The notes beneath the pieces are model-generated. The model did not search any database. It was not told the origin of the DNA and was given only the letters and a program-made list of their open reading frames with translations. Positions 2,801 through 46,301 of a stretch of DNA of 64,000 nt are shown here, in pieces. Both the position numbers and the translations under genes were made by a program. Location of the stretch: the IMG/VR virus record IMGVR_UViG_3300010334_000023, positions 1 to 64,000 of that record. The stretch is one strand, 5' to 3'. Position 1 is the stretch's first letter. Each line of letters starts with the position of its first letter.

Positions 2801-3298
2801 ATGTTAGACCTCGATACAGCCAAGAAACATGTCAGCACATGGATAGATACCGTGCTTACAGAACCCCAAGCTGAGCTCAACGGTATCAGCAGATGTCCTT
2901 TCGCAGCCACAGCGCTGGCCAAGGATCGAGTGGCCTGGGCACTGGGCTCAGACGTAGCATCTGACGTTGAGGCTGCCATAAACACCTGGCAGGACCACTC
3001 GGATATTGCTGTGATAGTTTATGATCCCAGCATTGACCCAGCGGCGTTTGCCACAGCTGTGGAATCTGCGAACCATCACATCTGCAAAGCCAGAAGCTTC
3101 GTCGCACTGGAGGATCATCCGGCGGTACCAGAACACGTGGCAGGACTGAGCATGAACCAAGGTCAGTATGCGTTGGTACTGCTAATGCCAGCTGCCAAGC
3201 TGCATCGTGCAAGCCAGATGTTGCGAGCCAGAGGCTATTATGACAACTGGAGCACAGAGGACATGGACGCTGTGGTTAATTGGAGATGGACATGCTGA
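2801..3298 (+). CDS. DUF1415-like protein
   Basis: WI...LNGISRCPFA motif and DHP; likely start is the ATG at 2801. Confidence 0.55.
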   Translation: MLDLDTAKKHVSTWIDTVLTEPQAELNGISRCPFAATALAKDRVAWALGSDVASDVEAAINTWQDHSDIAVIVYDPSIDPAAFATAVESANHHICKARSFVALEDHPAVPEHVAGLSMNQGQYALVLLMPAAKLHRASQMLRARGYYDNWSTEDMDAVVNWRWTC

Positions 3299-4428
3299 GC
3301 TCGCATCAACCCTGGGACACCCTGCGTGCATGCGCAGTTGGCATCAGCTATCCACCCGAATGGTACAGCTACATCGCCAACAGCCGTGTGCGCAAGGTCA
3401 TGGAGCGCATTGCTGTCGAGACCGAGGAAGACTACCAAAAGCTGATAGCCAAGCTCAGAGAGTTCAACGTTGATGTGGTGCGTCCTGTGCTGCCTCACAG
3501 CATGGAAGAGAGATTCCTGTCCATGGGCAGATACGCCATACCGCCCATGGTCCCCAGAGATCACATGGCCATGATCGGCAATAGGTTCTTCGCAGGACGC
3601 CAGGCTCAGACCAAGACCTATCTGGGTGCGCCCAGCGACTACATGAACATAGTCAACTACGTGGCTGAGCGAGGTAATAACATAGTCTGGGACAATCGTA
3701 TCAATGGCGCCATGGTCACTCGCATAGGCAGCGATATCTACATTGGCACCAACAACAGGCATCAATTCAGGTATACATATCTCGAGACTTGGCATCTAGA
3801 TCGAGAACCAACTTGGCCTGAGAAAGCACCACACGAATGGCACGAGCTCACAGTTGGGCAGCAGGAACAGTTCGTACACAACTATACTCGCAGGATCACT
3901 GACCTGTTCTCAGACTATCGCACTCACATAGTTGACACGCAGGGCCACACAGACGGGTCGTTCTCTCCGGTCTGCCCCGGGCTGATCGTGAGCTTGGTAG
4001 ATGTGCAGAACTATGCAGAGACCTTTCCTGGTTGGGAAGTGATATATCTACCAGAACAGAGCTGGAATGCCATAACTGATTTCACCAAACTCAAGCGCAA
4101 GAACAACGGAAAATGGTGGGTGCCGGGCGAGGAGCTCAATGACGACTTCACAGAGTTCGTTGAACTTTGGTTGAACCAGTGGGTTGGCTACGTGGAAGAA
4201 ACAGTGTTTGACGTGAACATGCTGGTCATAGATCGCAAGAACGTGCTGTGTAACAACTACAACAAAGCAGTGTTTGATGCTCTAGAGCGTCACGGCATGA
4301 CTCCTCACATCATCAACTTCCGACATCGCTATTTCTGGGACGGTGGCCTACACTGCATAACCAGCGACCTCGATCGCATCGGCGAACGACAGGACTGGTT
4401 CCCTGAAAGGTCGCAGAAGGCTATGTAG
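3280..4428 (+). CDS. amidinotransferase (glycine/inosamine-phosphate amidinotransferase family)
   Basis: W..L...VG, ETEED, PRD, GHTDG, FDVN.L, GGLHCIT catalytic Cys motif. Confidence 0.85.
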   Translation: MEMDMLSSHQPWDTLRACAVGISYPPEWYSYIANSRVRKVMERIAVETEEDYQKLIAKLREFNVDVVRPVLPHSMEERFLSMGRYAIPPMVPRDHMAMIGNRFFAGRQAQTKTYLGAPSDYMNIVNYVAERGNNIVWDNRINGAMVTRIGSDIYIGTNNRHQFRYTYLETWHLDREPTWPEKAPHEWHELTVGQQEQFVHNYTRRITDLFSDYRTHIVDTQGHTDGSFSPVCPGLIVSLVDVQNYAETFPGWEVIYLPEQSWNAITDFTKLKRKNNGKWWVPGEELNDDFTEFVELWLNQWVGYVEETVFDVNMLVIDRKNVLCNNYNKAVFDALERHGMTPHIINFRHRYFWDGGLHCITSDLDRIGERQDWFPERSQKAM

Positions 4429-4438
4429 CAGATTGCTG

Positions 4439-4903
4439 CTAAACCAACAGCGGATTTGCCTTGAACTGTGCATAGATTTCCTCGTAGGTCTTATCAAATA
4501 TGGAAATCTTGAGCAGTATACGTTCTTCTGGCCCATTGGTCACGCTGTGGCGTCGTTGCGTGTTAAGCAATGCTGACCGGTATAGATAATCTATGCCTTC
4601 AATGGTGATTGGCGCAGCATTTTCACTGATTATGAAATTCACTGAGCATTCCGTGCCATTGTCAGTGTGCTCTTTCAGACTGGCAAATGGCTTTAACCAA
4701 TAGAATCTTGGCCTGGCATTGATTCCCAGATCTGCGATGATCTTTTCGATATACTCGCTGGTATGCTTTTTTATCAACCAATCAGGCGTGCCCAATCCGG
4801 GTCTCGGATCAACATACACAGATGCTGATGATTTAATCTCAGCCGCTTGCTGCAGTAGTATTTCCTTGTCTACTGTGTATTTCAGATGCAGAATTGGTTC
4901 CAT
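4439..4903 (-). CDS. 2OG-Fe(II) oxygenase / Asp-Asn beta-hydroxylase-like cupin
   Basis: HxD (EHTD)...LLNT..HSV.N..R pattern. Confidence 0.65.
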   Translation of the reverse strand: MEPILHLKYTVDKEILLQQAAEIKSSASVYVDPRPGLGTPDWLIKKHTSEYIEKIIADLGINARPRFYWLKPFASLKEHTDNGTECSVNFIISENAAPITIEGIDYLYRSALLNTQRRHSVTNGPEERILLKISIFDKTYEEIYAQFKANPLLV

Positions 4904-4959: not shown

Positions 4960-5976
4960 TCACAAGAATTCATCCAGTAGATGATCCACATCTTCGTGCT
5001 TGACCAGATTCCGTTTGAACTGCTGCCAAGCTGCGGGCCAATTATAGCGAGCCTGTGCTATCTCAGCACAGACGTTGCGATCCAAGGTCAGCGCAGATTG
5101 TATCGCAGCGCCGATGTCTCGGTCCATGGCTCCAGTCTGGGGCAATATCACGTCTACGGGACCCTGCACTGGATAGGCTGCCACCGGTGTGCCCAGCACT
5201 TGGCTCTCTATCATCACCAATCCAAACGTGTCAGATTGGCTGGTGAACACCATGCAGTCAGCCTTGGAATATTCGTTGGCCAGATCCGCGCCGCGCAGCA
5301 TGCCTAGGAACTGCACACCTGGGTAGCGAGATCTCAGTGCTGGCAGATGTGGGCCATCGCCTACCATGACTAGTTCATAGACAGTGCTGTCCAGCTCACA
5401 GAAAGCTTCTAGGTTCTTTTCCTTGCTGATGCGTCCAACGCTGAGCAACCTTGGTTTGTCATTGAATGTGTGGCTAACGTAGGGCGTTAGGTTGCTGAGA
5501 TCCACACCTCTGCCAAACAGCACTACTTCGGCCTTGATGCTCTGTGCGATCAGCTCGGCTCTGATGCTGGGTGTTGGTACCATGACCTTACCATGCTGAT
5601 GGAACCAGCGCAGGAATCTCCAAGTCACTGTCTCTGGTATGTGGAACAGTCGGTTGAAATACTGTGCCCACTGCGTGTGATAGGCCGTGGTCAGCGCCAA
5701 GCGTCGAAAGCTGATGCGTGCCATCAGTCCCAGTGGACCTTCTGTGGCAATATGCAGGTGATCAGGTGCGAAACTGCGCACCATCTTGCGCACGCCCCAG
5801 GGCCAACACAGCTGCACCTCTGGATACCCAGGAGCTGGCCGATTTGGAAACAGTCCCGGATGTATGACCAAGACTTCCCAGCCATCAGCCTTGGCCTCGC
5901 GCACCAGATTGGTCAGCGTGGTCACCACGCCGTTGATCTGAGGTCGCCATGCGTCTGTGACTATGCAGAGCTTCAA
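4960..5976 (-). CDS. agt: GT4 glycosyltransferase, Agt-like diacylglycerol glycosyl/glucuronosyltransferase
   Basis: TDAW.PQ.NGVV.TL, HIATEGPLG, YHT, GRGVD, VGR.SKEKN, DTFGLVMIES motifs; next to plcP. Confidence 0.75.
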   Translation of the reverse strand: MKLCIVTDAWRPQINGVVTTLTNLVREAKADGWEVLVIHPGLFPNRPAPGYPEVQLCWPWGVRKMVRSFAPDHLHIATEGPLGLMARISFRRLALTTAYHTQWAQYFNRLFHIPETVTWRFLRWFHQHGKVMVPTPSIRAELIAQSIKAEVVLFGRGVDLSNLTPYVSHTFNDKPRLLSVGRISKEKNLEAFCELDSTVYELVMVGDGPHLPALRSRYPGVQFLGMLRGADLANEYSKADCMVFTSQSDTFGLVMIESQVLGTPVAAYPVQGPVDVILPQTGAMDRDIGAAIQSALTLDRNVCAEIAQARYNWPAAWQQFKRNLVKHEDVDHLLDEFL

Positions 5977-6146
5977 CGCAGCCTCTCGCAGCTGCCCGTG
6001 ATCTTGAATCGATCAAACTTCAGCTGATAGGTCATGCTGTTCAGTGCTGTCCTGCAGGCTTCTTCCGTGCGGAATTCCAAGCGTATGCGCCCTGGCACGT
6101 CACTGGGGTCACTCACGTGTATCGCCAACAGAACCAGGACCCACAT
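5973..6146 (-). CDS. 57-aa protein with hydrophobic N-terminus and two Cys (MWVLVLLAIHVSDP...)
   Basis: Translated by hand; fills the gap between plcP and agt, overlapping both. Confidence 0.6.
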   Translation of the reverse strand: MWVLVLLAIHVSDPSDVPGRIRLEFRTEEACRTALNSMTYQLKFDRFKITGSCERLR

Positions 6147-6879
6147 CCCGTTCTCCCCATCGCACTATCTCCCAGCGTCCATCCTCATGCTCAACCAATG
6201 CGGTGCAGCTTTCCACCCAGTCTCCGCAGTTCATGTAGGCAATACCATCCACGTCTCGGATGTTGGCATGATGTATGTGCCCACAGATGATGCCATCGCA
6301 GCCATGTGTGCGAGCGTAGCCGCTGAGATTCTCTTCGTAGTCCCCTATGAAGTTCACAGCCTGCTTGACCTTGTACTTGGCCCAAGCTGACAGGCTCCAA
6401 GGTCTCAGTCCCAGCATGCGCCTTGAGCCACTTACTACCACGTTGAGGCCTATGAGCGCATCATAGGCCCAGCTGCCAAGATGTGCTAGCCACTTGGCAT
6501 GCTTGATCACCACGTCGAACTGATCACCATGCATGACCTTGTAGCGCTTGCCATTGGCACCTCTGTACACGCAGGTATCAACCAAGCGTATGTTGCCAAA
6601 GTCGTGATCGCCAAAGCTGCGCAGGAACTCGTCGTGGTTGCCAGGCAGATATGTGACGTTAGTGCCCTTGCGTGCCTGCCTCAGTATCTTCTGTATGACG
6701 TCGTTGTGCACCTGCGGCCACATGAAGCTCTTGCTCATGGCCCATCCGTCAATGATGTCACCCACTAGAAACAGGTTGTCAGTCTCGAATGTCTTGAAGA
6801 AATCTAACAGCGCAGCAGCGTTGCTCATCTTGGTGCCCAGGTGAACGTCACTGATCCAGACGCTCCTGTACTCCATCAT
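6109..6879 (-). CDS. plcP: PlcP-type phospholipase C (LpxH-like metallophosphoesterase)
   Basis: ISDVHLG, GDIIDGW, W.Q.HNDVIQK.LR.ARKG, GNHDE, HGDQFD, WS.SAWAK..VK.AVNFI, CGHIH, GDWVESCTA. Confidence 0.8.
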   Translation of the reverse strand: MMEYRSVWISDVHLGTKMSNAAALLDFFKTFETDNLFLVGDIIDGWAMSKSFMWPQVHNDVIQKILRQARKGTNVTYLPGNHDEFLRSFGDHDFGNIRLVDTCVYRGANGKRYKVMHGDQFDVVIKHAKWLAHLGSWAYDALIGLNVVVSGSRRMLGLRPWSLSAWAKYKVKQAVNFIGDYEENLSGYARTHGCDGIICGHIHHANIRDVDGIAYMNCGDWVESCTALVEHEDGRWEIVRWGERDVGPGSVGDTRE

Positions 6880-7904
6880 AGGTTAAACAGAGCCTTCACT
6901 GTGTCTAAGCCGTTCAACACTTTCTGTCGATCTGCTTCAGCACGGGCCTTGGCTTCTGCGGTCTCGGCCTTGTCACGCTTCTTGGCATTGACGTCTGTCA
7001 TGGCTTTCTGTTCGTAGCGATCCACGAACTTGGCCAAGAAGTCATGCGCATCTGCAAACCCAGCCAGGTCTTTCTTGCCGTACATGTGGTTAAGCTCAAA
7101 GCTGCGTGCCAAGCCTTTCACTGCGTTGACCAGCTTGGCGATCTTGACGTCACTGGGATCGTTGCCACGGAAACGGTTCAGCAAGGTATCCAGCTTGGCA
7201 GTGCTGGGCTCTCGTCCAGTGATCTGCTCATACTCGTTGACAAAGATGTCGTAGATAAAACTTTCTGGATCAGTGCTGATGGTCTTGATCACCGTGTTCT
7301 TCTGCTTGCTGAACGGCACATGCACATCATCCACGGTCTTGAGCTGCACGCCCGCATGCTGTATGCTCATATCCAACAGCTCGCCCAGCACGCTGAACAT
7401 GTTACCAGTGAGCAGGCCTTTGACCCCGCGCTCTGGTGTCACTCTGGCAGCACCCCAGGCCCTTAGCTGAGGTGGGTGCCACATGAAGTCCACCTGCACG
7501 TACTGATCGGGTCCTATCTGGAATATGGGATGGCCTGGCTTGCTCTCGCCCGTGTGTATGTAATCCGGCTGAGTGCTTTTCACGAACTGATCAGCCAGCT
7601 GGTTCCAGTGGTTGGTGTATTGACCGTAGCTGGCACCCATCACATCTGGCGCTATCATCTGCAGATCGATGTCACCGTAGATCTTGTCTGGATGCTCTTT
7701 GCTATCTATCTCATGATAGGTGCCAGATCCAGTGGGCCGACCCAGCTCTACCTGACCTTGATTCATAGCACTGAGCCAGCGATTGAAGTCTCGCACAAAC
7801 TGCTGCACCTTGGCCAGCGTGATCTTGACAGTGGCTGGTTTGATCACCGTGCCCTGTGTTACTGTGGTGTCCCAGCCACCTTCGAGGAGTTCTGTTATGC
7901 GCAT
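6876..7904 (-). CDS. putative pol-beta-type nucleotidyltransferase
   Basis: TGSG...YGDIDL and VQVD motifs; TAAATA upstream; MRITELLE N-terminus. Confidence 0.55.
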   Translation of the reverse strand: MRITELLEGGWDTTVTQGTVIKPATVKITLAKVQQFVRDFNRWLSAMNQGQVELGRPTGSGTYHEIDSKEHPDKIYGDIDLQMIAPDVMGASYGQYTNHWNQLADQFVKSTQPDYIHTGESKPGHPIFQIGPDQYVQVDFMWHPPQLRAWGAARVTPERGVKGLLTGNMFSVLGELLDMSIQHAGVQLKTVDDVHVPFSKQKNTVIKTISTDPESFIYDIFVNEYEQITGREPSTAKLDTLLNRFRGNDPSDVKIAKLVNAVKGLARSFELNHMYGKKDLAGFADAHDFLAKFVDRYEQKAMTDVNAKKRDKAETAEAKARAEADRQKVLNGLDTVKALFNL

Positions 7905-7911
7905 GAGCTAT

Positions 7912-8256
7912 TTACACACTGCCCCACTTGAGCAGATCAAACATCGTGGTGTATTCCCAGTGATCAAAGGATGGCGCAAACTCACGGCCCGGCCCAGCAT
8001 GATGGTCTATCACGCGCCTTCGCAGTATGCGCTTCAGCCACACGATCTTGCCCAGCTTGATCGGACAGTCTGTGCTGAACGGTGCTTGATCATGCCAATA
8101 CAACATCTGCACTGGTCGCCACGCAAACCATGATTCCCATCGCTGGCGTTCTGGCCTGATATAGAATCTATGACCGTAGAGGTTATCTAAATCGTAGCGA
8201 CTGTAGCAACTTGTCATGCAGCAGCATAGTGCAGACATGGCTAGGGCAGCAATCAA
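7912..8256 (-). CDS. hypothetical protein (true start probably downstream of the hairpin)
   Basis: ORF with W..WFAWRPV motif. Confidence 0.55.
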   Translation of the reverse strand: MIAALAMSALCCCMTSCYSRYDLDNLYGHRFYIRPERQRWESWFAWRPVQMLYWHDQAPFSTDCPIKLGKIVWLKRILRRRVIDHHAGPGREFAPSFDHWEYTTMFDLLKWGSV

Positions 8257-8273
8257 TCTGGTTGCTGCCCTAG
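8241..8273. terminator. 12-bp hairpin, probable terminator
   Basis: CTAGGGCAGCAA / TTGCTGCCCTAG inverted repeat just after the 8292 stop. Confidence 0.65.
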
Positions 8274-8291: not shown

Positions 8292-8633
8292 TTAGATCGC
8301 TTCGCGCATGCCCGCACGCTCTTCCATCTTTTGGATGCGTTCGGAAGTCTTGATCATGGTCTCGAGGTTCTTGGCGCGGATGGCAGCAATGTCCTTGACC
8401 TCAGCCACGGTCTCTGCCTGCGCTACAGCCTTGCCCTCTGCTTTGACAGCTGCCTTGCCTTCGATGAAAGCCAGCGCAGCTTCCTTGGACATGGCCTGCG
8501 GCAGCGCCTGCAGCTGGATGTCCGTATGTCCATTGCGTGCGAGGACCTTGACGCGATCCATAGAAGTAGCAAAGCGAGCCTTGGTCTCGCCGTTGAGAGT
8601 GCTGTAACCAGCGACCGTGAAAAGCTTTTCCAT
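8292..8633 (-). CDS. hypothetical early protein (MEKLFTVAGYS...K.RFA...VKVL..NGHTDI.L..LP..MSK)
   Basis: CAGGAG RBS, own promoter and terminator. Confidence 0.8.
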   Translation of the reverse strand: MEKLFTVAGYSTLNGETKARFATSMDRVKVLARNGHTDIQLQALPQAMSKEAALAFIEGKAAVKAEGKAVAQAETVAEVKDIAAIRAKNLETMIKTSERIQKMEERAGMREAI

Positions 8634-8680
8634 GTGTAACTCCTGTGTGTGTTGCGTTGTGTGTGTTTGCTTCAACATGT

Positions 8681-8712
8681 GTACAATAGCACGGTTATAC
8701 AGCACGTCAACC
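8681..8712 (-). promoter_or_regulatory. sigma70-type early promoter (GGTTGACG...GTGCTATTGT)
   Basis: Repeated motif. Confidence 0.75.
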
Positions 8713-8772
8713 ACTTTTTTCCAGTTTTTTCACCAAAGATCTCAGTAATTTAGCCCTAGCTGAACTGCGTTC

Positions 8773-9258
8773 TCAGCCCTTTTTAGCCACAGGGACGTGG
8801 TAGATCTCGTCGAAATCCTCGCCGGGACCCGGGGGTTCCAAGCTGGCGATCATGCTGGTCATGACCCCAGCAGGGATGGTCTTGCCCGCCCGGCCAGCCA
8901 AGCGCCGCTCCAATTCTGCCCCGTCCGGGGTAGGAAAGAACAACGCGATGCGCTCATAGCTCTTGGGCACCTGTCCCAGCTTGCCTCGGCGGGTCTTGGC
9001 CGTGAGGTTGGTCTGGTCCCAGATGATGTCTCGCCGGTCGCGCACGGCCTGCTTCACGGTTTCGCGCAGTGCTGCTGTAGCAGCCTTGATCTCAGTCTCA
9101 AAGACTTCGTTATAGGTCAGGCCCTGCGCAGCTGCCGCAGCTTCTATGTAGTCATCTGTGCTGGCTATCACAGCCTCATGGCTGTGCTCGCGTATCCATG
9201 TGCTCTTGCCCGAGCCAGGAACGCCTATGAGCATGAACAACTTTGGCATGTCATTCAC
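8773..9258 (-). CDS. AAA_33-type P-loop kinase (polynucleotide 5'-kinase-like)
   Basis: GVPGSGKST, STDD, IIWDQTNL, R...R, K.IP. Confidence 0.8.
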   Translation of the reverse strand: MNDMPKLFMLIGVPGSGKSTWIREHSHEAVIASTDDYIEAAAAAQGLTYNEVFETEIKAATAALRETVKQAVRDRRDIIWDQTNLTAKTRRGKLGQVPKSYERIALFFPTPDGAELERRLAGRAGKTIPAGVMTSMIASLEPPGPGEDFDEIYHVPVAKKG

Positions 9259-12086: not shown

Positions 12087-12527
12087 TCAGAAATCTCCTG
12101 GGGCTACCTGCATGACGCGGACGCCCTGCGCACGTATTGCATCCACGACCTGGTTTCTATCGTCAAACCATAACCATGGTTCACCATGCTCCGCACGGAT
12201 ACGTTCCAATAGCTCGACCTTGACGATGCTGTCCTGCCTGTGGTCCCTGTGACCTCTCATGTAGAGATCATCAAAGAAGATACCGTTGGTGTTCAACCAT
12301 GTGTTGGTCACAGCACGGCTGTCTTCGCCGCGTCCACTGCAGAGTATTATAGTGTGACCCTGTGCGGCAAAGTTGGTGTTGATCCACTTGATGTCCTCGT
12401 ACACCGTGTCCAGTGACATGCCAGCATTGAACGCAGCCCAGTTCTTGGGCTTGCTGGCCACCCAATGTCGCCGATGCTCTATATTAGCGATGGTTCCATC
12501 GATGTCAAACACTATGATCTTGGTCAT
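12087..12527 (-). CDS. HAD polynucleotide 3'-phosphatase (PseT phosphatase-domain-like)
   Basis: FDIDGT, SGR, LYMR...D.R.D..VK, FDDR.QVV. Confidence 0.85.
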   Translation of the reverse strand: MTKIIVFDIDGTIANIEHRRHWVASKPKNWAAFNAGMSLDTVYEDIKWINTNFAAQGHTIILCSGRGEDSRAVTNTWLNTNGIFFDDLYMRGHRDHRQDSIVKVELLERIRAEHGEPWLWFDDRNQVVDAIRAQGVRVMQVAPGDF

Positions 12528-12544
12528 GATCTGCTCCTTGATCA

Positions 12545-12575
12545 CACGTTAGCACAGTTTGATCGGCTGTCAACC
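12545..12575 (-). promoter_or_regulatory. sigma70-type early promoter (GGTTGACA...GTGCTAACGT)
   Basis: Repeated motif. Confidence 0.7.
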
Positions 12576-30204: not shown

Positions 30205-30535
30205 TGATGGGTTTATTCTGTTTCCAAGGAAACCCATCGAAAACTCATTGAGGTTACGCCGCTAGGCGAATCTCAGATGCAACGAAGTTGTCGTTTGCAG
30301 TTAGAAAATTGGACAATCCGGTTACCCGGAGGCGTGCCTAACCTGCTGACTCCTGCTACCCTTTACACGTCTGTCGATCCTATTTCGCCCCCATCAAAGA
30401 TACACACCTAAAGCTAGAATGCCTCATAGGGTCACGAAGCAACTAGGGACTTCAACCCTCGCATGTATCTATGGTGGAGGCGCCGGGTACCGCCCCCGGG
30501 TCCAGACCGCTTATTACGATGCTATCAACATCAAC
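30205..30535 (-). ncRNA. ssrA: circularly permuted two-piece tmRNA, tag ANDNFVASEIRLAA
   Basis: Acceptor piece ends GACCCGGGGGCGGTACCCGGCGCCTCCACCA (3' end at 30472); intervening segment about 80 nt; coding piece starts GGGGGCGAAATAGGATCGAC at 30392; tag ORF 30298-30254; terminal hairpin 30206-30238. Confidence 0.93.
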
Positions 30536-30759
30536 TAGGTATTTATAGCAGGTTTTTTGTACAAGTCAACCCTGGCCCACTCGCAGCTGCACTTAACATC
30601 GCAGAATCCCAGATTGCGCTGGGCGTTGTGGTACAGTGGTGCCCAATAGCTCCACTGCCGGTCACCACCCTGGAACTGGTGCAGTATGGCTTCGGTTGGC
30701 TTACCGCAATGGCTGCAGGGCTGTCCCTGGATCCAGGTCATAGTTGGAGTTGGCTGCAT
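30535..30759 (-). CDS. small Cys-rich protein (CxxC...FC...C)
   Basis: ORF in operon. Confidence 0.6.
   Translation of the reverse strand: MQPTPTMTWIQGQPCSHCGKPTEAILHQFQGGDRQWSYWAPLYHNAQRNLGFCDVKCSCEWARVDLYKKPAINT
30540..30547 (-). promoter_or_regulatory. T4-type late promoter TATAAATA driving the tmRNA
   Basis: Exact TATAAATA directly upstream of the acceptor piece. Confidence 0.7.
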
Positions 30760-32403: not shown

Positions 32404-33093
32404 TTATTGGTGTATAACGTGGCTCAATGAACCATCAGCGTTGGTATGTATCCACACAGTACCATCGGGTATAGGCCAACCAGCATATTCATAATGCCAA
32501 GCCCAGCGTGTGACATAAACTACAGTAGGTTCATCACTGCGCACTATACCAAGTCCAAGATCCATCACTGCCTTAGCGAAATATCTATCGCTCCACAGTT
32601 GTTGTCCTGGTTCGACTATCCAGCCTGTCATGGCCGGCAGGGCCTTGCGGGTGAGGAACCAGCTGTTGGTATCCACCATGTTCTCACCGTTGCTTTCCAC
32701 ACGATCAACGTACATTTCACGATCGTCTTGGCTGTGTATGACCCTGGTGGCTATCACACCATCAGCACCGCTCTCAGACAAGATGTCTACCATGAGCTCA
32801 ACGTGATTGGGCTTGAGATAGCAATCAGCGTCGATGAATCCCACAGCATCGTAGCCTTGGCTAAATGCGCTGAGAGCTGCTACTGCCCGCGGTGTCGCGC
32901 CTGCATCGGCGTGAGTTTTAGGTAGCTTGATGTGGTCTACCGTATCAAGCTTGTCTACCATGGGATGAGGGTTACCATCACTTACCAAGATGTGTCGAAT
33001 GTTAGCATAGGTCTGAGCCTTTACGCTGCCATGACACCTGCGCAGAGTGGCAGCATCCTCGGCATGATAGGGTGTGATCATAGCAACACGCAT
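32404..33093 (-). CDS. GT2 glycosyltransferase
   Basis: ITPY, SV..QTY, V.DG, FIDAD. Confidence 0.8.
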   Translation of the reverse strand: MRVAMITPYHAEDAATLRRCHGSVKAQTYANIRHILVSDGNPHPMVDKLDTVDHIKLPKTHADAGATPRAVAALSAFSQGYDAVGFIDADCYLKPNHVELMVDILSESGADGVIATRVIHSQDDREMYVDRVESNGENMVDTNSWFLTRKALPAMTGWIVEPGQQLWSDRYFAKAVMDLGLGIVRSDEPTVVYVTRWAWHYEYAGWPIPDGTVWIHTNADGSLSHVIHQ

Positions 33094-46219: not shown

Positions 46220-46301
46220 GAGAACCTTCCCCGGCCAACAGGCCTTGATGCCTTTATTGTGGTATTTATTTAGCGATAGCAGTGATCACTGCTCATAGAC
46301 T

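Follow-up and report, generated by a model that had tools for sequence, protein, structure and literature searches.

We identify, on the minus strand of a large T4-superfamily phage genome segment, an intact cassette of a PlcP-type metallophosphoesterase homolog and an Agt-type GT4 glycosyltransferase homolog, with a small conserved virus-specific protein encoded between them. The cassette lies in a 64,000-nucleotide stretch of IMG/VR record IMGVR_UViG_3300010334_000023 (positions 1 to 64,000; hereafter the window). We propose, with reasonable confidence but without enzyme activity, lipid product or expression data for any viral copy, that the phage converts host phospholipids into phosphorus-free glycolipids during infection. 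This agrees with the original prediction of a phage-borne plcP-agt pair, although that prediction overlooked the third gene; the two enzyme genes are not adjacent. The cassette and its context comprise:

6109..6879, minus strand: plcP homolog, an intracellular PlcP-type phospholipase C (LpxH-like metallophosphoesterase), 256 aa, ATG start
5973..6146, minus strand: small conserved virus-specific protein, 57 aa, between plcP and agt, overlapping the plcP 3' end by 38 nt and the agt start by 4 nt (TTGA)
4960..5976, minus strand: agt homolog, a GT4 diacylglycerol glycosyltransferase (Agt/GTcp type), 338 aa, TTG start
6876..7904, minus strand: upstream 342-aa ORF of unknown function, translationally coupled to plcP (ATGA overlap)
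7909..7914, minus strand: TAAATA element (T4-late-promoter-like core), 4 nt upstream of the 342-aa ORF's ATG
4439..4903, minus strand: downstream 154-aa ORF of unknown function, last gene of the minus-strand block

The setting is phage, as the window encodes T4 Rnl1, topoisomerase II, RNR, baseplate and tail genes and a DnaB-like helicase, and is syntenic with the phage contigs L003/L004 and L009. An alpha_tmRNA match at 129.8 bits hints at a host, which is probably an alphaproteobacterium. A nucleotide search of the region against sequenced phages gave no match. The 342-aa ORF is conserved upstream of plcP in L009 and two further contigs but is absent in L003/L004, L005 and L171, and the 154-aa ORF is conserved after agt in locus L008 but not in L009 or L003, where T4 Rnl1 follows directly. 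Neither gave a Pfam, PDB or PADLOC signal even at lenient thresholds, and because they are not consistently linked to the pair we treat both as context rather than as conserved members of the cassette.

The phosphoesterase carries a Pfam Metallophos domain (42.9 bits, E 1e-10) and the blocks PGNHDEFL, WSLSAWAKYKVKQAVNFI and CGDWVESC, and its residues D11, H13, D41, N81, H117, H201 and H203 align with the seven metal ligands of LpxH. It is 51–61% identical to its best 80 cellular relatives, which are nearly all Alphaproteobacteria and include Rhizobium, Agrobacterium tumefaciens, Bradyrhizobium, Roseibium and Pelagibacteraceae proteins, and it nests among these in trees, although the LpxH outgroup is a single sequence on a very long branch, so rooting is unreliable. 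For comparison, characterised PlcPs share only 46–47% identity with each other. Atu1649 is the named PlcP homolog in A. tumefaciens (PMC3972451), and SAR11 PlcP complements a Phaeobacter plcP mutant (PMC4796936). Orthology rests on same-genus or same-family proxies, such as A. tumefaciens and Pelagibacteraceae proteins, rather than on the experimentally characterised sequences SMc00171, MED193_17359, PB7211_983, PA3219 and BCAL2364. On this basis the gene is an ortholog-grade relative of bacterial PlcP, the intracellular phospholipase C that cuts the phosphorylated head group off PE, PG or PC and leaves diacylglycerol. Consistent with this assignment, a GT4 lies directly downstream of plcP in 56 of the 80 closest cellular loci, and linkage of plcP to a non-phosphorus-lipid synthase gene also occurs in 29 of 80 IMG/VR loci; in the window agt lies 130 nt downstream.

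The GT4 begins with IVTDAWRPQINGVV, carries Glyco_transf_4 (58.6 bits) and Glycos_transf_1 (56.1 bits) domains (E 1e-15), and is 36–46% identical to the GT4 found directly downstream of plcP in those cellular loci. It retains 14 of 15 mutationally validated residues of SAR11 Agt/GTcp, on a numbering ruler validated 15/15 on Pelagibacteraceae orthologs. The UDP-sugar motifs GRVAxEKN and FPSxTDTFG appear as GRISKEKN and FTSQSDTFG, and G16, G80, G83, R182, K187, T250, F251, G252 and E257 all align with the nine donor-site residues shown to be essential in GTcp by mutagenesis. The catalytic dyad His104-Asp256 corresponds to H100 and D249, including the Agt-specific Asp in place of the Glu of other GT4 enzymes. 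Of the remaining residues of the diacylglycerol pocket, R156 and W313 are conserved, but GTcp Thr162, reported as crucial for activity, is Gly155 in the window, L008, L009 and L003, so acceptor specificity might differ; cellular homologs show Thr, Ser or Asn at this position. The retained residues are among those that let SAR11 Agt glycosylate diacylglycerol from UDP-glucose or UDP-glucuronate. Both enzyme genes are under purifying selection, with dN/dS of 0.07–0.12 for plcP and 0.11–0.13 for agt.

The stretch of ~135 nt between the two genes was considered as a non-coding insertion or mobile repeat, but it has no repeats in the window and no DNA matches elsewhere, while its 57-aa peptide is conserved in other phages. 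Homologs lie directly after viral PlcP in loci L112, L116, L117, L130, L152 and L168–L173, the family has at least 217 clusters and no Pfam domain, and it was found in 0 of 80 cellular plcP loci. The AF2 model (pLDDT 94.3) predicts a beta-beta-alpha-beta fold in which the hydrophobic N-terminus is a core beta-strand, so we reject a membrane anchor. The invariant residues are D16, P18, C31, K43, F44, F47 and C53, and dN/dS is about 0.19. Structural searches found no relative in the PDB (best E 0.95) and only an uncharacterised family member in BFVD. We infer that the protein is an accessory factor of the viral PlcP/glycosyltransferase step.

The original prediction that control is phage-driven, with plcP coupled to a phage gene behind a TAAATA promoter, is supported in part. 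The ATGA overlap confirms the coupling, and no match to the Pho box CTGTCATNNNNCTGTCAT with up to 3 mismatches was found between 4900 and 8300 (17 in the whole window against 11.9 +/- 3.6 expected). Of 22 TAAATA copies in the window, 13 lie in the sense orientation within 60 nt upstream of a start, where about 1 is expected; TAAATAGCTCATG is conserved in L009, and similar elements precede plcP in L003, L005 and phage Mosig. However, the copy at the cassette lies unusually close to the ATG and contains the preceding ORF's stop codon, so it may be coincidental, and if it is a late promoter, expression would come late for supplying DNA synthesis. The canonical T4 late promoter TATAAATA has only 3 copies in the window, none at the cassette.

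Relatives of the phosphoesterase are numerous in uncultured phages, with at least 558 PlcP-like stretches in IMG/VR, although some IMG/VR contigs may be misclassified cellular DNA. The gene is also present in the cultured phages Mosig (on SAR11) and S-SRM01 (on Synechococcus), where it is annotated as LpxH. A pstS-like gene lies divergently beside plcP in Mosig, the order PstS, Porin_O_P, PlcP, small protein and GT2 occurs in the IMG/VR contigs L172, L169 and L170, and PstS is near 8 of 80 IMG/VR loci. In our literature searches we found no paper recognising phage-encoded PlcP, in keeping with the original statement that no characterised viral example was known.

The cassette is best compared with the bacterial PlcP-Agt lipid renovation pathway (S. 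meliloti SMc00171; Phaeobacter MED193; SAR11 HTCC7211 PB7211_983/960; P. aeruginosa PA3219-PA3218; B. cenocepacia BCAL2364-2366), with which it shares two enzyme families in the order plcP then agt. It is encoded by a phage, lacks a detectable Pho box and dagK, is preceded by a phage TAAATA element, and has a virus-only protein inserted between the two genes; viral copies form clades distinct from cellular ones. Like the pstS, phoA and phoH genes of marine T4-like phages, the cassette comprises phage-borne, host-derived genes that plausibly relieve phosphorus limitation during infection, but those genes import or mobilise external phosphorus, whereas this cassette would mobilise the cell's own membrane phosphorus. 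Membrane phospholipids are one of the few large phosphorus stores in a small aquatic bacterium; by a rough estimate not computed from data, a cell may hold millions of phospholipid molecules against about 4e5 phosphorus atoms in a 200-kb phage genome, so that membrane phosphorus could pay for several to tens of genomes. We infer that conversion would proceed whatever the host's Pho status, that the released phospho-head groups would add to the phosphorus pool for phage nucleic-acid synthesis, and that the glycolipid would keep the membrane intact until lysis. PlcP releases phospho-alcohols rather than free phosphate, however, and no dedicated phosphatase is linked to the cassette. The phosphorus-scavenging purpose remains an inference, strengthened by the pstS and phosphate-porin neighbours of viral plcP in other phages.

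More tentatively, our data raise the possibility that phages of aquatic Alphaproteobacteria and other hosts carry a widespread and so far unrecognised auxiliary metabolic module of PlcP, a virus-only small protein and a GT4 or GT2 glycosyltransferase, sometimes fused into an island with pstS and a phosphate porin. Such a module would force phospholipid-to-glycolipid conversion independently of the host Pho regulon, with the small protein as a new viral regulator or coupling factor of PlcP. If so, part of the environmental plcP signal and all of the viral lpxH AMG signal would be phage-driven lipid renovation. Viral lpxH entries in AMG catalogues are probably mis-assigned to LPS biosynthesis, and metagenomic plcP abundance, used as a marker of bacterial P stress, may partly count phage genes.

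An alternative that we consider unlikely is that the enzymes are PlcP and Agt but the selected benefit is not phosphorus supply; remodelling could instead block superinfection by other phages, alter grazing susceptibility, tune lysis timing or stabilise the envelope of a cell producing a large virion. Lipid remodelling is known to change phage attachment and predator-prey outcomes in bacteria (PMC9938194, PMC9457565, PMC9804370), no Pho box was found, the possible late-type promoter would put expression late in the infection cycle, and many viral loci carry plcP without any glycosyltransferase, so bilayer refilling is not universal. Against this, viral plcP repeatedly sits next to pstS and a phosphate-selective porin, the classical phosphorus-stress AMG neighbourhood, and nothing in the cassette resembles known exclusion or defence proteins: PADLOC was silent, and a faint GT4-conflict Pfam hit reached only 16.5 bits against a cutoff of 26.

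Public annotation implies instead that the phosphoesterase is a true LpxH of the lipid A pathway and the GT4 an LPS or cell-wall glycosyltransferase. JGI calls the homologs LpxH, the Mosig and S-SRM01 records name a UDP-2,3-diacylglucosamine hydrolase or diphosphatase, and KEGG-based AMG lists file viral lpxH under LPS biosynthesis. The AF2 model of the phosphoesterase (pLDDT 82.9) also best matches LpxH structures (E 2e-11, TM about 0.55), with a calcineurin-like core and a helical cap at 118–191. This reading is very unlikely and largely refuted by the sequence evidence. The protein scores 41.3 bits against a cutoff of 134 and 35.9 bits against 190.35 for the NCBIfam LpxH equivalog models NF003743 and TIGR01854, respectively, and is 20.6% identical to E. 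coli LpxH. The substrate-site Arg80 is replaced by His (H82) and Asp122 is not conserved (H127). As originally stated, LpxH has GNRD, seen directly in the PDB LpxH alignments and as GNRDF in E. coli LpxH, whereas motif III here is GNHDE and 165 of 167 PlcP-like sequences have GNH[D/E]. The nearest cellular relatives come from the alphaproteobacterial groups in which PlcP was defined, the GT4 carries Agt-specific residues, and no other lipid A genes lie nearby.

That the genes are inactive passengers or host DNA mis-assembled into a phage contig, as the sometimes artefactual nature of AMG-like genes in metagenomic contigs and the lack of a nucleotide match among phage isolates might allow, is very unlikely and already contradicted by phage hallmark genes on both sides, the order orf342, plcP, agt, then Rnl1 in independent assemblies, intact ORFs with all catalytic residues, dN/dS of about 0.1, separate viral clades, and the presence of the gene in Mosig and S-SRM01. 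Finally, the window's own GT2 (32404-33093) is unrelated to the GT2 that follows PlcP in L172 and L173.

We identify, within the region 4960-6879, two open reading frames on the minus strand:

6109-6879, minus strand: a 256-aa ORF assigned by Pfam to the calcineurin-like metallophosphoesterases
4960-5976, minus strand: a 338-aa ORF with a TTG start, assigned by Pfam to the GT4 glycosyltransferases

Every sequence block that the original prediction reported for these proteins is present. The surroundings are clearly phage, and include T4-type RNA ligase 1, both topoisomerase II subunits, RNR large and small subunits, baseplate, tail-fibre and virion proteins, and a DnaB-like helicase. About 89 genes are packed at 95% coding density, 72 of them on the minus strand. 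The region has no nucleotide match among 50,697 phage records, whereas the topoisomerase is closest to jumbo T4-superfamily phages of Sinorhizobium and Agrobacterium, at 51-55% identity. The window also encodes, at 30206-30573 on the minus strand, a two-piece (permuted) tmRNA of the alphaproteobacterial type (Rfam alpha_tmRNA, 129.8 bits), for which ARAGORN gives the tag peptide ANDNFVASEIRLAA; a TATAAATA lies at 30540-30547 on the same strand. Together, the topoisomerase and the tmRNA suggest an alphaproteobacterial host, although this is an inference.

Our analyses indicate that the phosphoesterase is PlcP-like and not LpxH. The two NCBIfam LpxH equivalog models score 41.3 and 35.9 bits, against cutoffs of 134 and 190, and a sequence search of the PDB finds only the two LpxH entries, and only weakly (E 6e-6). 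A scan of one genome per species returned 80 best relatives at 51-61% identity, nearly all of them Alphaproteobacteria (Bradyrhizobium, Rhizobium, Agrobacterium tumefaciens, Mesorhizobium, Roseibium, and six Pelagibacteraceae), with four Betaproteobacteria. These are the lineages in which PlcP was defined, as SMc00171 in S. meliloti and atu1649 in A. tumefaciens (PMC3972451), and the SAR11 HTCC7211 gene complements a Phaeobacter plcP mutant (PMC4796936). Characterised PlcPs share only 46-47% identity across classes (PMC8528852), so 51-61% is well within the family, with the reservation that orthology rests here on proxies from the same genus or family rather than on experimentally characterised PlcP sequences. 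Aligned with authentic E. coli LpxH, the window protein is 20.6% identical and keeps all seven metal ligands, but has His82 where LpxH has Arg80 and lacks Asp122. Of 167 PlcP-like sequences, 165 carry GNH[D/E], while E. coli LpxH has GNRDF. In phylogenetic trees, E. coli LpxH sits on a very long branch and the window protein lies inside the alphaproteobacterial radiation. An AlphaFold model (pLDDT 82.9) best matches the LpxH crystal structures (E 2e-11, TM about 0.55, 18-20% identity) and has the same helical cap inserted into the core, at residues 118-191. The protein thus has LpxH architecture but PlcP family membership.

The GT4 is Agt-like. The biochemical study of HTCC7211 Agt/GTcp (PMC8231724) defines two UDP-sugar motifs, GRVAxEKN and FPSxTDTFG; a His104-Asp256 dyad, in which Asp replaces the Glu of other GT4 enzymes and cannot be exchanged for it; nine donor-site residues; and four diacylglycerol-pocket residues. 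The GT4 proteins encoded directly downstream of plcP in six Pelagibacteraceae genomes reproduce all 15 published positions with identical numbering (14 of 15 in one of them, L039), and therefore served as a ruler. Mapped onto the window protein, 14 of 15 positions are conserved (G16, L56, G80, G83, H100, R156, R182, K187, D249, T250, F251, G252, E257, and W313), and the motifs read GRISKEKN and FTSQSDTFG. The exception is Thr162, which is Gly in the window and its three closest relatives, a position that varies between Thr, Ser, and Asn in cellular homologs. Identity to cellular Agt homologs is 36-46%, the same range as that of the validated P. aeruginosa Agt1 and Agt2 against the Phaeobacter Agt (41% and 35%).

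In 56 of the 80 closest cellular loci, a homolog of the window GT4 lies directly downstream of the phosphoesterase, which is the 'type 2' plcP-agt arrangement described by Sebastian et al. The pair recurs in independent assemblies of related phages. Contig L009 has the order orf342, plcP, agt, T4 Rnl1; L003/L004, a 189-kb contig, has plcP, agt, Rnl1; and contig L008 carries the pair as well. Contigs L005-L007 and L171 carry it in quite different phage-like backgrounds, and two of these phage-like contigs also encode curli secretion components (CsgF, CsgG, and a curlin-repeat protein) and a CHASE2-guanylate cyclase (L005:5257-8800 and L171:6588-8171). Between the window and these relatives, dN/dS is 0.07-0.12 for plcP and 0.11-0.13 for agt. 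The genes are therefore maintained by selection in phage genomes.

The original prediction described two genes, but we identify a third. In the window, plcP and agt are separated by about 130 nt that the nearest relatives lack. This stretch is not a spacer, but most of a further ORF:

5973-6146: a 57-aa ORF that overlaps the plcP 3' end and shares a TTGA overlap with the agt start

Its product has homologs at 38-53% identity placed directly after the PlcP gene in seven IMG/VR loci, and a profile search finds at least 217 clusters, all 'hypothetical' and without a Pfam domain. In the three further contexts inspected, it again sits between PlcP and a glycosyltransferase, a GT4 in L171 and a GT2 in contigs L172 and L173, and it was found in none of the 80 cellular plcP loci. 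The protein models with pLDDT 94.3 as a beta-beta-alpha-beta mini-domain, so the hydrophobic N-terminus is predicted to be a strand and not a membrane helix. Asp16, Pro18, Cys31, Lys43, Phe44, Phe47, and Cys53 are invariant. It has no significant PDB match, and the only BFVD match is an uncharacterised protein of an uncultured phage. Its position suggests an accessory role to the PlcP and glycosyltransferase steps, although this is inferred and its function is unknown.

We next compared the company that plcP keeps in viral and cellular loci.

Neighbours of plcP in the best 80 IMG/VR loci (49-75% identity, GC 31-63%) and the best 80 cellular loci
Neighbour of plcP	IMG/VR loci	Cellular loci
Adjacent Agt-type GT4	29	56
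Adjacent GT2	5	0
Small protein	8	0
PstS homolog within the flank	8	6
Phosphate-selective porin	2	0

Phage contigs L172 (721-4880), L169, and L170 carry a five-gene phosphorus island beside a phage tail gene, in the order PstS-like binding protein, phosphate-selective porin (Porin_O_P), PlcP, the small protein, and a GT2 glycosyltransferase in place of Agt. The window has a GT2 of its own (32404-33093, minus strand, 229 aa), directly upstream of the RNR small subunit gene, but this second glycosyltransferase is unrelated to the GT2 that follows PlcP in L172/L173. Two IMG/VR viral contigs with GC content like that of the window (0.51-0.52), L098 and L099, carry the PlcP homolog (65-67% identity) without any adjacent Agt, GT2, or small protein; the glycosyltransferase is therefore dispensable even in similar-GC phages. 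Among isolates, Pelagibacter phage Mosig has the gene at 47% identity, divergently transcribed from a pstS-like gene, and Synechococcus phage S-SRM01 has a more distant copy at 35%. Both are annotated as LpxH. In the Agt tree, all 34 viral or metagenomic sequences separate from all 55 cellular ones on one branch (SH-aLRT 93), and in the PlcP tree the window lies in a 50-member all-viral clade (support 84). The viral/cellular label needs only three changes, and presence of an adjacent Agt changes at least 13 times among the viral sequences. This points to an old viral gene family with frequent gain or loss of the glycosyltransferase, rather than repeated recent captures from hosts.

The original prediction placed plcP, coupled to a phage gene, behind a TAAATA promoter and considered that its control seems phage-driven. 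No Pho-box-like sequence lies anywhere near the cassette. The plcP start overlaps the stop of the upstream ORF, and TAAATA lies 4 nt upstream of that ORF:

6876-7904, minus strand: a 342-aa ORF of unknown function that contains GSGTYH...YGDIDLQM and has no Pfam, PDB, or PADLOC match

The full T4 late consensus TATAAATA is rare in the window (3 copies). The hexamer TAAATA occurs 22 times, and 13 of these copies lie in the sense orientation within 60 nt upstream of a start codon, where about one would be expected from the share of sequence in such zones. The copies occur on both strands (for example 46268-46272, 38886, 49263, 58478), and several precede structural genes. AT-rich intergenic composition contributes to this enrichment. 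The element is probably the core of this phage's late-type promoter. TAAATAGCTCATG is conserved in L009 although the upstream gene differs there, and TAAATA-like elements also precede plcP in L003, L005, and Mosig. Phage-driven expression is therefore plausible, but the copy in question is atypically close to the ATG and contains the stop codon of the preceding ORF, so it remains unproven. A perfect 15-bp inverted repeat with a 3-nt loop (8241-8273), between ORF 8292-8714 and ORF 7912-8256, may mark the boundary of the transcription unit that contains the cassette.

Full-text searches for PlcP together with phage returned no report of a phage-encoded PlcP, as judged from titles and abstracts, although most subscription journals lay outside these searches and an earlier report cannot be excluded. 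Viral 'lpxH' (K03269) is listed as an LPS-biosynthesis AMG in oligotrophic surface seawater viromes and in Lake Baikal viral metatranscriptomes, without further comment, and the Mosig and S-SRM01 genome papers do not mention the gene. A recent virocell study notes how little is known about lipid remodelling in infected cells under low phosphorus.

The sequence shows a complete PlcP-type active site, a complete Agt-type donor site and catalytic dyad, purifying selection, a phage transcription context, and phosphorus-stress neighbours in other phages. We propose, as an inference, that PlcP cleaves host PE, PG, or PC to diacylglycerol plus a phospho-alcohol, that host phosphatases, or direct use of glycerol-3-phosphate, return the phosphorus to metabolism, and that Agt converts diacylglycerol to glucosyl- or glucuronosyl-diacylglycerol, so that the membrane survives until lysis. 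The small protein is likewise inferred to assist or regulate these steps. The main alternative keeps the same enzymes but assigns a different selective benefit, such as superinfection exclusion, grazing resistance, or envelope properties, and would fit the many viral loci with plcP alone and a possibly late promoter. The LpxH/LPS reading and the artefact reading are essentially excluded.

Our data confirm the gene pair and support its interpretation as plcP-agt at the level that sequence analysis can reach, with function still to be demonstrated. The finding is also larger than originally predicted, with three genes rather than two, and a widespread, mis-annotated viral gene family rather than a single curiosity. 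The bacterial PlcP-Agt pathway and viral phosphorus AMGs are already known, and the cassette is a variation on these systems, not a new kind of enzyme.

Elsewhere in the window, a 382-aa protein (3280-4428, plus strand; phrog_25854, unknown function) ends in a GGLHCITSD motif, and Pfam is silent on it. An RNA-repair set is spread over the region (471-1730, 8773-9258, and 12087-12545, all on the minus strand), comprising a T4 Rnl1-type RNA ligase, an AAA_33 kinase resembling the polynucleotide kinase domain, and a separate HAD_PNKP phosphatase domain, which looks like a split PNKP.
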